Source: Octopus sinensis (Eukaryota). From it: 61,131 nucleotides of DNA. A program made the translations under genes and the position numbers. Under the pieces are notes generated by a model. That model was not told where the DNA came from. It saw only the letters and a list, made by a program, of their open reading frames with translations, and made no database searches. Shown piece by piece: positions 8,037 to 60,703 of the stretch; the stretch's first letter is position 1, and every line of letters starts with the position of its first letter. Location: contig NW_021833689.1 of assembly GCF_006345805.1 (NCBI RefSeq), forward strand, positions 1 to 61,131, in the 5' to 3' direction.

Positions 8037-8089
8037 TTAGTTCGATCCCAGGCGGATTAATATGTTCAAGGTGTCGGCTTCTCCGTACC
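8037..8089 (-). CDS. Gene A exon 5 (terminal coding exon)
   Basis: TTATTTTCAG|GG TAC GGA GAA GCC GAC ACC TTG AAC ATA TTA ATC CGC CTG GGA TCG AAC TAA = (G)YGEADTLNILIRLGSN*. Phase 1 matches exon 4. The five exons sum to 885 nt = 294 aa plus stop. Confidence 0.8.
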
Positions 8090-8365
8090 CTGAAAATAAC
8101 AACAACATCAGTGAAAACAGCGATATAATTAAACCATTCTACTAAAGGCACAAGGTCAGCAATTTCGGGCGGGTCGGAGAGGGGTGGTGGTGGTTAAGTC
8201 GATTACATCGACCGCAGTGTTCAAGTGGCACTTATTTTATCGACCCCCGAAAGGGAAGGAAGGTAAATTGACTTCGGCGGAATTTGAACACTGAACATAG
8301 AGACAGCCGAAATGCCGTTAAATATTCTGCCCGGCACGCAAGCGATTTTGCTGGCTCACCGCCTT

Positions 8366-8850
8366 ACAACAACAACAACAACAACAACAGCAACAATAGT
8401 AATAATAATAATAATAAAAATAAAAATAATAATAATAATAATAATAATAATGATAACAATAATAATAACAATAATGATGATAATAATAATAATAATAATA
8501 AAAAAAAAAAATAATAATAATAATAATAATAATAATAATAACAACAACAACAACAATAATGATAATAATAATAATAATAACAACAACAACAACAATAATA
8601 ATAATAATAATAATAATAACAATAATAATAATAATAAAATAAAAATAAAAATAATAATAATAATAATAATACTAATAATAATAATAATAATAATAATAAT
8701 AATAATAATAACAATAATGACGATAATAATAATAATAATAATAATAATAATAATAATAAAAATAATAATTATAAAAATAATAATAATAACAACAACAACA
8801 ACAACAACAACAACAACAACAACAATAATAATAATACTAATAATAATATA
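8366..8850. repeat. (AAT/AAC)n microsatellite block in gene A intron 4
   Basis: Directly visible. Similar blocks at 6260-6480, 17466-17625, 22704-22900, 23456-23700 and 59398-59560. Confidence 0.95.
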
Positions 8851-9076
8851 AAGGATTGAGACAACTCTTCCAGAAGATATAGAGTCAAAGTTAAAAGAAG
8901 AGTGCCATTGTCATCTGGTGAACGATATTTCGACATCTTGTGTGTCTTTTACAGGTTCAAAAAATAATTTTGTCAGTTATTTTTGGAACCTGTCGTAGAA
9001 ACACAAGATGTCGAAATATCGTTCACTAGATGACAATAGCATTCGTTATTTTCTCTCCTTATTTCTTTCTGTGTTC

Positions 9077-9112
9077 CTTTCTGTAGAAGAGCGCAGGCTC
9101 GAAACGTTAAAG
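9077..9112 (+). ncRNA. Hammerhead-like motif with variant core
   Basis: CUUU CUGUAGA A GAGC GCAG GCUC GAAA CGUU|AAAG. Stems I and II and the palindromic stem III are present; core position A6 is U. Confidence 0.45.
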
Positions 9113-9234
9113 ACTTTTTCACTTCCCGAGCGTTAAACTAATACATCTGTTTGTTGTCTACATCACCTGAATTCGACTTTTGTTTTTTTGTTGTTTTTTT
9201 TGTGAATTCTCACCCTACATACAAACTTAACCGA

Positions 9235-56790: not shown

Positions 56791-58045
56791 CAATATGGAA
56801 TTACACACATATCCCCATGCGTATCTACAGTTAAACCCAAGTAAATATATACATATACTACTAGGGATATGTACAGATATAAATATCTATACCCACGAAC
56901 AGCCACACACGTATATCTTAATACACACATATACACACACGTGTACATACACACACATACGTATATACATACATACGCACGTACATACATATACATATAT
57001 ACACACACACATATATATAAATACAGATACACATACATACACATTTAGATATATCCCTATATATACATATATATATAACAAAGTTGAGTTGTGGGGTATC
57101 GCACGAGTGGAATTATATACGAAGGAAGGTTTGAAAATGCAATTTAAAATATGTTTATTTACTTGTTTTATACATATATATATACATACACATATATACC
57201 TACAAACGCATATATATATATGCACATATAAATGCACATATACATATACACATATACATACATACTTGCATACCCATATATATATATACACACATACACA
57301 TGCATACATATAAATATCACCATGTATAAATATTCATACATTCACGTCCATCGATTCATGTATATACACACATTACATCTTCTAAGTGTCTATCTTGTTT
57401 TGGGGGATATAATAGTTTTAATTTAATAATTTAATATTTAATATTTAATAAATATTTAATAATTCAATGTAATTTAAATGCAAAGATAAAAGATAAAGGA
57501 TAAAAAATTAGAAAATAAAATAAAGTAAGAAAAATACAAAGAAACTATTATAATAATCGCAATAATACTAGTGATCATGATATTGTTATAATATTACAAT
57601 ATAATATTGATTGGAAAATATATATTGGTTGGAGAGATTTCAAGAGTATCCACTTATGTAAATTATACTCTTATTTTGATTATTAGAGAATGTATTATGT
57701 TAAAAGCTTCTTGGTAGTTATTTACCCTTTAATACTAGTTTAATATTACTAAAGATATTAATGAAGTTATTAGTATTTGTTGGTAGTGATATAGTAAATT
57801 CTAGAGACAATGGTTAGATTATTTATCTATGTTCTATATAAATAAGTATAAGTAAGTATACATTTTCTAAATTGAATGGTATCTTTATACTATCTGTGGT
57901 TAGAATTTATTGAGGTGAGGGTAAACTTAGTAAGTAGTTGGGGGTAAGACTAGGAGTAGTTAATCCAATGCCTGAGTAGTGGCAGGATGAAGTAGATTAT
58001 GGAAATTCCAATGTGAGATGATCATGAAGGGATTAAAATGGAGAT

Positions 58046-58500
58046 TTAAGGATTATAATATTTAAAGGTTTTAGTTAATTTATGCATGCAAGTTGGTTTG
58101 AATTCAGATCTTTTATTAACTAGTTTGTCTTTATCCGGGAATCTAATGATTTTTGGTAGTTCTAAGGAGCATAGTTGGCAACCAGTTCTATTATTTTTAT
58201 AAGTCGCTGTCGATCCAACTATGGACCATCTAAGGTTAAATTTTATATTTTTGTCCTTAAGTTCCCAAATCCTACTTGATAAAGATGTACTGTTAGCCTT
58301 ATTTTTGAGTCTAAAGGACGACCGGTGATTATAGAACCTAGATTTCCAGGCGGATGAGCACCCAATATAAATAAGAGTATTTAATTCAGTAATTATTTCA
58401 CAGGAGTAAACTGTTTTTTTTGCCAGGAAATTTCCACGTAAGGGACACGCTGCTGCAGTCACACAATTGCACCCGTGATTACAATTTTCAGGCCGTCCGT
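58046..58500 (-). mobile_element. Penelope-like GIY-YIG endonuclease remnant
   Basis: CNC...CPL...VYSCEI...IYIGCSSAWKSRFYNHRSSF...LSSRIWELK...WSIV...CQLC.LE...VNKRSE...CMH, the C-terminal PLE endonuclease pattern. Confidence 0.88.
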
Positions 58501-58829
58501 TATTTGTCCGTGGATGGATAATTTCGATATGGTTGTTATCATGGCTACTACTACGGTAGATCGAGACTATGCCTACATTTTCGCTATTATTATCGTTATT
58601 ATCTTTATTAGTGCTATTCAAATTTTTCCTACCTATAATTCTTCCACCGCTAGTACTGATGTTAGACCTATTATCCACATCCCCATTATTGCTAGTTATA
58701 TTGGTATTGTGATTACTTTTCGCAATTATTGTTTGATGTGGACTGAGTCATTCCATTATTAGTAGTAGTATTATCTTCATTTGACGTGGCAGTATTCTAT
58801 GTTATGCCATTAAACCTTGTTGGGTCTTA

Positions 58830-59170
58830 GTTAGTTAGTTAGTTAGTTAATTTGGCTCAAAAGCAAATAGCAAGGCCATGTAGGGGGACATGGAGTTAAG
58901 TACAGGGTGGTGTTCATGTAAAGAGTTCAGGCCACTTGAGGTCAAGGGAGTCTTTGAACAAAGCGGTCGTCGGCATCTTCACCATCTCGTCTGGCAGCTT
59001 GTTCCACGGATCCGCAACCCGGAGCTTTTCGGAATGACCCCACAGCCGACGCTCTGGAGCAGGAGTGAAGAACAGCTCTTTCGAGAGGTTATACTTTCCG
59101 CTTATGATGTTGTGGGCAAGAATGAGATCACCACGGCGGCAGTTTATCAGTTCATCTGTTACACTGTGAT
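58830..59170 (-). mobile_element. CR1/L2-group LINE 3' remnant with (TAAC)n tail
   Basis: RRGDLILAHNIISG...GHSEKL...WNKLPDEMV...FKDSLD is a typical CR1 ORF2 C-terminus with an internal deletion. (GTTA)n at ~58828-58850. Confidence 0.75.
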
Positions 59171-60554
59171 TCGATATATAAGTATTGTTATTAGGTTCAA
59201 TATTATCTCCATCCTTATAATGAGTGCTATTACTAGCTTTCTTATCATTGCTATCGCTGTCCTGAATATTGTTATAGTAATTAGTATAGCTATTGTTGTT
59301 ATCAGTGCTAAAGTCGTTGTTTAGGGAACTACTATCAGTTATCTCTAAGCTATCAGCTTGGCGGTTAGACACCATAGCTGTAGGGATAATAACTTCGTTA
59401 TTGTTATTATTATTATTATTATTATTATTATTATTATTATTATTATTATTATTATTAATATTATTGTTATTATTATTATTGTTATTGTTATTGTTATTAT
59501 TATTATTGTTATTATTATATTATTATTATTATTATTATTATTATTATTATTATTATTATCATTCAGTAGTTTTATTTTTATAACGTGCTTTCACTTCACT
59601 ACCGAGCGCAGCTCCGTGTGCCTTGGGTATGTGCTGTGATTTGTTGTGATGCTCTGATGGTTACTGTATTGAAAGTGTTCTGCATAGGATGTGTGCAGTG
59701 CCTAGTAGTGCAATTAGTATATATTATATATATACATATATATATATACATATGTATATACATATGTACATACATATATATACATATATATATATACATA
59801 TATATGTATAATATATACATACATATGTATATATATATATATATACATACATACATATGTATATATATATATATATATATATATATATATATATATATGT
59901 ATGTATGTATGTATGTATGTATGTATGTTGTGTGTGTGTGTGTGTGTGTGTGTATATATGTTTCTGTGTCTGTGCTTGTCTCCCCAACATCGCTTGACAA
60001 CCGATGCTGGTGTGTTTACGTCCCCGTAACTTAGCGATTTAGCAAAAAAGAGACCGATAGAATAAGTACTAGGCTTACAAAGAATAAGTCCTGGGGTCGA
60101 TTTTCTCGACTAAAAAGAGGCGGTGCTCCAGCATGGCCACAGTCAAATGACTGAAACCAGTAAAAGAGTAAAAGAGTGTGTGTGAGTGTGTCTGTGTATG
60201 TTGTTGTTTGTTTGTTCGTTCCTTCTCGAGCCACGACTGGCTCATAAGGGCCGGTTTCCCGGTTTCCTTGGCGTATAGGTTCCCCCACCTGGACAGGACG
60301 CCGGTCCGTCGCGGGTGAGCTGCAAGATGTAGGAGGAAAGAGTGAGAGAAACTTGTGGCGAAAGAATCAGCAGAAGTTTCGCCATTACCTTCTGCCGGAG
60401 CTGCGTGGAGCTTAGGTATTTCGCTCATAAACACACACATCGCTCGGTCTGAGATTCAAACCCACGATCTCTCGACTGTGAGTCCGCTGCTCTAACCACT
60501 AGGCCATGTGCCTCCACAGTCTGTGTATGCGCTTGCGTCTATGTGTGTACATAC

Positions 60555-60703
60555 CTTATCCATCGGAAGATTTCTCCATGAGTCAAGGATCAAATTCCGG
60601 TAGAGACCTACATCTGAAGCATATGGTTTTATTTGGTAAAAGCTATTATAAACGGGCGCTATCGTAGGGATCTTTACTCTAAATACCATCACCGATGTAT
60701 CAG
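60555..60703 (-). CDS. Gene B exon 2 (paralog of gene A; exon 1 presumably beyond the window)
   Basis: TATTTCAG|CT GAT ACA ... GAT AAG|GTATGT; 149 nt, phase 1->0. DTSVMVFRVKIPTIAPVYNSFYQIKPYASDVGLYRNLILDSWRNLPMDK (compare gene A FRHPILDIWNLLPIDE). Confidence 0.82.

Follow-up and report, generated by a model that had tools for sequence, protein, structure and literature searches.

Two octopus genes pairing a PAN-like module with an unnamed C-terminal domain of probable fibrinogen-related origin

What kind of protein is encoded by two genes, here called A and B, that lie head-to-tail with five exons each on an unplaced scaffold of Octopus sinensis, and what is the domain of ~185 amino acids (aa) with which each protein ends? 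The stretch of DNA analysed (the window) comprises 61,131 bp at 38% GC and belongs to assembly GCA_006345805.1, in which it is an unplaced scaffold. The window genes are ordinary, real and already annotated loci of an old octopod family. What is new is that a large domain family without a name has been recognised, together with its likely fibrinogen origin, the loci themselves being already known.

Gene models and the octopod family

A sequence-only reading of the window had proposed nine small minus-strand exons, chained in frame into a hidden tandem pair of genes with intron phases 1,0,2,1. All of this holds except the word hidden. At each of the seven proposed junctions there is a GT donor, and an AG acceptor behind a polypyrimidine tract. 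Joining the five exons of gene A gives one open reading frame (ORF) of 294 aa, as had been stated and the same as the RefSeq protein, with intron phases 1,0,2,1, and the four exons of gene B that lie in the window give 173 aa, open up to the stop codon (Table 1). The two proteins are 35% identical across 140 aa (E 4e-32); for exon 4 alone the identity is about 34%, close to the one-third given previously. The shared motifs that had been listed (ILD.W..LP, RNST..WF, RGWL...C, GYG..D and CAFAA) are all found in the window proteins. A six-frame scan of the whole window using the family profile matches these exons and no further family sequence.

Both genes are in fact already in RefSeq. Gene A is 'uncharacterized protein LOC118761572 [Octopus sinensis]' (100% identity, full length). 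Gene B corresponds to LOC118761573, whose annotation begins at an internal methionine and gives 127 aa. Exon 1 of gene B, which was expected somewhere beyond position 61131, was found on scaffold VCDQ01006016.1, the start of which overlaps the end of the window. It lies ~7.8 kb past the window end, is 340 nucleotides (nt) long, and ends in phase 1 at a GTAAGT donor. The same scaffold carries a partial RefSeq protein, LOC118761874 (163 aa), whose last 49 aa are identical to gene B exon 2. Across both scaffolds gene B is an intact five-exon gene of 287 aa (340/149/164/164/47 nt). From the sequence, LOC118761573 and LOC118761874 are two pieces of this single gene, and the two unplaced scaffolds should be joined, which provides a correction to the O. 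sinensis annotation.

The relatives of gene A form at least 28 octopod clusters (clustering at 90% identity; E 4.9e-90 to 1.8e-51, 40-57% identity, ~295 aa) from O. sinensis, O. bimaculoides, O. vulgaris and Argonauta hians, which bears out the lineage expansion suspected from the pair alone. Many of them carry consecutive locus numbers and share a single O. sinensis chromosome of 15.1 Mb; LOC118768577-80, listed in RefSeq as 'uncharacterized protein', are examples of the family. In P0005, a paralog located on a chromosome-scale scaffold, the exons measure 331/179/164/164/53 nt with phases 1,0,2,1, and because this paralog has the same layout and phases as the window genes, the five-exon structure holds across the family. 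Genes A and B belong to this family by full-length similarity and by their five exons, with phases 1,0,2,1 at homologous positions, and they retain all 19 of the columns that are invariant in an alignment of 17 family members.

Gene B falls in a different subfamily from gene A, being 77% identical to one paralog (P0198) and 56% identical to another (P0063). In these three, exon 2 is shorter by 13 residues (39 nt, comparing genes B and A), and there is no CxxxxC loop; in nearly all other family members this loop precedes an H-Y-R / F-F-R motif. The duplication was thought to be old, and this is confirmed by the low identity of the two copies and by their membership of different subfamilies. The nearest relative of gene A is 51% identical, and synonymous sites are therefore saturated. 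Outside the octopods, gastropods, bivalves and a sea star have proteins of ~290 aa built in the same way, with PAN_1 as a genuine Pfam domain.

The C-terminal domain and the N-terminal module

A search with the family profile found the C-terminal domain in 1,061 representative clusters at E <= 1e-3, and in 625 at E <= 1e-10. The carriers are molluscs, corals, crinoids, a sea star, amphioxus and Myxococcota bacteria, so that the earlier description of the domain as mollusc-expanded was too narrow, and all of them are named 'uncharacterized' or alike. The domain is often part of a multi-domain protein, where its partners are ZP, EGF, TSP1, Sushi, discoidin, C-type lectin, TIG and FG-GAP domains; in distant relatives the partners are all extracellular modules of the adhesion or lectin type. 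Two cysteines 16 residues apart (C237 and C253 in gene A) are invariant in every alignment that covers them, and flank a D-x-G-W motif. A literature search found no paper on the family, on the loci, or on the oyster, Aplysia or Gigantopelta relatives.

A model of the domain alone was built for gene A with a 54-sequence alignment (predicted local distance difference test, pLDDT, 91.3; predicted template modelling score, pTM, 0.88). Fibrinogen subdomain A is absent from this model, and all 50 of its top 50 PDB matches are fibrinogen-related domains (FReDs), namely those of fibrinogen beta and gamma, ficolins, FGL1, tenascin-R, MFAP4, angiopoietins and ANGPTLs. Some carriers of the C-terminal domain, from bacteria, corals and metagenomes (among them P0068, P0076, P0084, P0093, P0135 and P0151), have a canonical fibrinogen subdomain A (...VYCDMTTDGGGWT...) directly before it, and the two together make a module of ~225 aa, the size of a whole FReD. 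NCBIfam NF040941 matches 11/11 of the modules that contain subdomain A, and with a profile built from these modules, 73 FReD and intelectin sequences of solved structure are hit (best E 4e-9). The modules were also compared by hhalign with a FReD profile, constructed from relatives of a gamma-chain sequence verified to be identical to PDB 3FIB, giving 97.6% probability and E 3.2e-12 over columns 7-103. It is thus quite probable that the C-terminal domain is a highly divergent version of the B and P subdomains (B+P) of a FReD, and that the octopod/mollusc lineage swapped subdomain A for a PAN/apple module. In genes A and B, the YCDxxxxGGGW subdomain A with its disulfide is missing, and the PAN-like module is in its place. 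The sequence-only reading could not assign the domain a function. It is indeed unnamed and has no Pfam model, but it can probably be placed near the FReDs, both by structure matches and by the subdomain A that stands in front of it elsewhere.

The FReD lectins (PF00147: ficolins, snail FREPs, tachylectin-5A, FIBCD1, FGL1, angiopoietins) contain the only structural neighbours of the octopus domain, and the B+P position behind subdomain A is where bacterial and coral members carry it. Like the octopus family, for which this location is presumed, they are extracellular, and both are disulfide-stabilised and often expanded in invertebrates. They differ in having a Pfam match and a subdomain A, neither of which the octopus domain has, and the template modelling (TM) scores between them are 0.35-0.44; nor can the FReD calcium site or acetyl pocket be recognised in the octopus domain. 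The closest precedent for such divergence is the intelectins (X-type lectins), a lectin family whose sequence can be recognised in its N-terminal fibrinogen-like part only. Intelectin-1 and XEEL are matched by the extended profile through subdomain A, which the octopus proteins lack; intelectins are unmatched by the domain-only profile, and none is among the top 50 fold matches. A coral protein (P0318, Oculina patagonica) has PAN_1 and a canonical Fibrinogen_C domain in a single secreted protein, and follows the same PAN-then-fibrinogen logic, although its FReD is detectable by Pfam and the octopus one is not. NF040941, a bacterial family entitled 'fibrinogen-like YCDxxxxGGGW domain-containing protein', extends over the initial ~45 residues of the modules from bacteria and corals; it represents subdomain A only, and leaves uncovered the part that is present in the octopus genes.

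Two other domains were considered as relatives. Pfam DUF7922 reaches 32 bits on one amphioxus protein (P0029), but only by summing four repeats, none individually significant; it is below the cutoff on P0174 and absent from 54/54 domain sequences, and was rejected. The apextrin C-terminal (ApeC) domain, like the octopus one, has a distribution in marine invertebrates and bacteria; its cysteine pattern probably does not fit.

For the N-terminal module, a full-length AlphaFold model of gene A (pLDDT 73 overall, 63-86 in the PAN-like region) has the hairpin-loop alpha/beta fold of PAN/apple domains. Foldseek matches it to the HGF NK1 N-domain, the SML-2 PAN lectin and the PAN domain of Colletotrichum copper oxidases (probability 0.99-1.0, E 4e-4 to 1e-2, root-mean-square deviation (rmsd) 2.4-3.6 Å over 80-90 columns). 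Moreover, PAN_1 is passed by 7/10 ~290-aa relatives of the same architecture, at 22.7-38.5 bits (the relatives being from Aplysia, Mytilus, Gigantopelta, Dreissena, the sea star Asterias, Nucella and Argopecten), and the octopus module sits where the genuine PAN_1 sits in these proteins. On the fold matches of the model and the PAN_1 of the relatives, the N-terminal module is a degenerate PAN. Its cysteines in gene A are C63 and C84 only, the two-cysteine pattern that had been noted before, while gene B has a third, C110, besides C64 and C89; with only two cysteines kept, one of the two PAN core disulfides is possible. Other PAN/apple proteins with a fold like that of the octopus module (HGF N-domain, Sarcocystis SML-2 lectin, the apple domains of plasminogen and prekallikrein) have four cysteines, where the octopod copies keep two and stay below the Pfam threshold. 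The identification has to accommodate the absence from genes A and B of the four cysteines that form the two core disulfides, and the fact that PAN_1 is above threshold in 0/27 octopod members (best PAN_3 E 0.005, PAN_1 E 0.034), gene A scoring 13.5 bits against a gathering threshold of 21.4.

Coordinates and other features of the window

Table 1. Positions of the gene A and gene B exons and of other features in the window.
Feature	Position	Strand	Size and phase	Content
Gene A exon 1	18266-18590	−	325 nt, ends phase 1	Start codon at 18590; signal-like hydrophobic segment, aa 7-26 (hydropathy); PAN-like module, aa ~47-109 (PAN fold matches)
Gene A exon 2	17275-17462	−	188 nt, ends phase 0	C-terminal domain begins here; W-L-K-V-Y-A strand, C147-x4-C152 loop, FFRHPILDIW
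Gene A exon 3	14893-15050	−	158 nt, ends phase 2	FDGRNST..WF....L.SSPW.DL
Gene A exon 4	9983-10143	−	161 nt, ends phase 1	R.F.IG...C237..D.RGWL...C253...P..Y
Gene A exon 5	8037-8089	−	53 nt with stop	GYGEADTLNILIRLGSN, then stop
Gene B exon 2	60555-60703	−	149 nt, enters phase 1, ends phase 0	No CxxxxC loop
Gene B exon 3	52697-52860	−	164 nt, ends phase 2	
Gene B exon 4	50818-50981	−	164 nt, ends phase 1	
Gene B exon 5	46081-46127	−	47 nt with stop	
Dovetail overlap	58699-61131			99.95% identity to start of VCDQ01006016.1 (neighbouring-scaffold record L001, 18152-20632)
(AAT)n-rich tandem repeat	6220-8010		Unit ~700 bp	Units 6460-7160 and 7160-7860, 92% identical
Copies of exon-5 coding piece	6220-6249, 7118-7147, 7833-7862			No AG acceptor
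Non-LTR retrotransposon ORF	20351-22162	−	603 aa	RVT_1 and zf-RVT
5S ribosomal RNA gene	32627-32744	+	Full-length	96.2 bits, E 1e-19
ORF in gene B intron 2	58046-58678	−	210 aa	YIG...R..H-type motif
Short interspersed repeats	60720-61131; e.g. 2972-3585, 16651-17053			...GTTCCGAGTTCAAATTCCGCCG...GGGGTCGATAAAATAAGTACCAG...

The tandem repeat lies just past the stop codon of gene A, and within it the coding piece of exon 5 has been copied three times. Between genes A and B there is an ORF of a retrotransposon lacking long terminal repeats (non-LTR), of which a copy 92.5% identical is found in intron 1 of gene B on the neighbouring scaffold (L001 11888-13689). The 5S ribosomal RNA gene (gathering score 38) stands alone in the 27.5-kb spacer between the two genes, and no tRNA genes were called by ARAGORN in the window. 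The ORF in intron 2 of gene B looks by eye like the remnant of a GIY-YIG endonuclease, possibly from a Penelope-like element; Pfam gave no match for it or for the other smaller ORFs (58914-59375, 9275-9613 and 3859-4296). The short interspersed repeats have many copies in the window and in the neighbouring scaffold, with 88-92% identity.

Proposed role and alternative explanations

In each protein residues ~7-26 form the only hydrophobic stretch, with TPEE or TPQE coming after it, which suggests that both proteins are secreted, and the predicted mature proteins are ~31 kDa with an isoelectric point (pI) of 8.7-9.2. An NST sequon is common to both. The signal-like N-terminus and the shared sequon are thus as the sequence-only reading described them. 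The complete gene B protein has five cysteines (its relative P0063 is partial), of which one may be unpaired and available for dimerisation.

Ficolins, snail FREPs, tachylectin-5 and PAN lectins are extracellular binding or recognition proteins for glycans or surface ligands. On balance it is likely, if with less assurance than the fibrinogen relationship, that genes A and B encode secreted extracellular recognition proteins of an old octopod family, comprising a PAN module and a divergent fibrinogen-like module. The recognition role is an inference from the architecture, and from analogy to FReD lectins, PAN lectins and the coral PAN_1/Fibrinogen_C protein. In the mechanism that we propose, the N-terminal hydrophobic segment would direct secretion, the conserved NST would be N-glycosylated, and the PAN-type module and the fibrinogen-like globular module would each present one binding surface, the ligands being most likely glycans or other surface or extracellular ligands; expansion of the paralogs in octopods would then diversify specificity. 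We consider the chances of this full scheme to be evenly balanced. Set against it is the observation that the protein cluster of gene A contains one sequence only, which comes from one contig, and so no transcript-derived copy of gene A was seen. A more tentative suggestion, which we think rather doubtful, is that the last ~120 residues (consensus WFS...SSW.DL...FSI.G...RRF.IN..YGGC..D.GWL...C.W...P.F.YS) could be a new ligand-binding subdomain, which replaces the classical fibrinogen P-subdomain.

The derivation of the C-terminal domain from a FReD is well supported but not proven, because the octopus proteins have no subdomain A and the domain alone has no significant sequence similarity to FReDs. 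Several results count against it. The fold matches are weak (best E 0.0097, probability <= 0.89, TM 0.35-0.44, rmsd ~9 Å). Most of the significant hhalign score comes from subdomain A, which is missing in the octopus proteins, and the domain alone gives a probability of <= 0.4% against FReDs in three settings, even with 157 versus 60 sequences. There is no Pfam model for the domain, with 0/54 domain sequences matched and no Fibrinogen_C among them, and the domain-only profile has 0 hits against PDB sequences, just as a PDB sequence search with gene A found nothing. Similarly, Fibrinogen_C does not match the proteins of genes A and B, whose sole Pfam signal is the sub-threshold PAN_1, and since both the profile match and subdomain A are lacking they are not members of Pfam Fibrinogen_C. 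These results could also describe an independent unnamed fold, recurrently fused behind a YCDxxxxGGGW module and having only a partial or convergent resemblance to FReD B and P: no profile method links the domain alone to FReDs, the TM-scores are below 0.5, and the bacterial GGGWT piece has an NCBI model to itself, as a domain of 46 residues, and may be a mobile module. We nevertheless regard an independent fold as unlikely, given that a query without subdomain A retrieves only FReDs in its top 50 PDB matches, that subdomain A plus the domain has the ~225-aa size of a whole FReD, that the W-x-L-V-F-R strand is continuous with GGGWT, and that the hhalign alignment extends ~55 columns beyond subdomain A.

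A different question is whether the proteins are recognition proteins at all. Small, basic (pI 8.7-9.2) products of a lineage-expanded family, with a signal-like N-terminus and with relatives that pair the domain with the matrix modules ZP, EGF and TSP1, might instead be secreted non-lectins, such as salivary or venom, mucus or adhesive, or extracellular-matrix components of a specialised octopus tissue, as the sequence-only reading had hinted. This is improbable, in that bivalves, gastropods and a sea star, all lacking a venom gland or suckers, share the architecture, and the literature search found no mention of the loci or of the oyster, Aplysia or Gigantopelta relatives. One could also ask whether either gene, or both, is a copy in decay or without expression, on unplaced scaffolds of poor assembly, with open frames that are a remnant. 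The best relative of gene A is only 51% identical, the cluster of gene A has one member on one contig, and a tandem repeat containing dead copies of exon 5 lies beside this gene; in gene B the CxxxxC loop and W7 are missing, and the cysteines are odd in number. However, all nine exons are open with GT-AG sites intact, in DNA of 38% GC, the 19/19 family-invariant columns are retained, the peculiarities of gene B are common to its 77% paralog and P0063 and are therefore subfamily traits, and gene B is complete once the scaffolds are joined. Decay is accordingly very improbable, and the preferred reading remains that of secreted proteins with a PAN-like and a divergent fibrinogen-like module.

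The wider consequence concerns the domain rather than the two loci. More than 1,000 representative clusters, from bacteria to amphioxus, carry a domain that has neither a Pfam model nor a name, and the domain alignment is material from which curators could define a family. Its placement beside the FReDs provides a testable hypothesis, extracellular recognition of glycans or other ligands, for many 'uncharacterized' invertebrate proteins, including the octopod-specific expansion. Should the last ~120 residues prove to be a new subdomain in place of P, they would represent an unrecognised class of extracellular recognition domain, spread through Myxococcota, corals, echinoderms, amphioxus and molluscs, which in octopods would have expanded independently into a diversified receptor-like repertoire.

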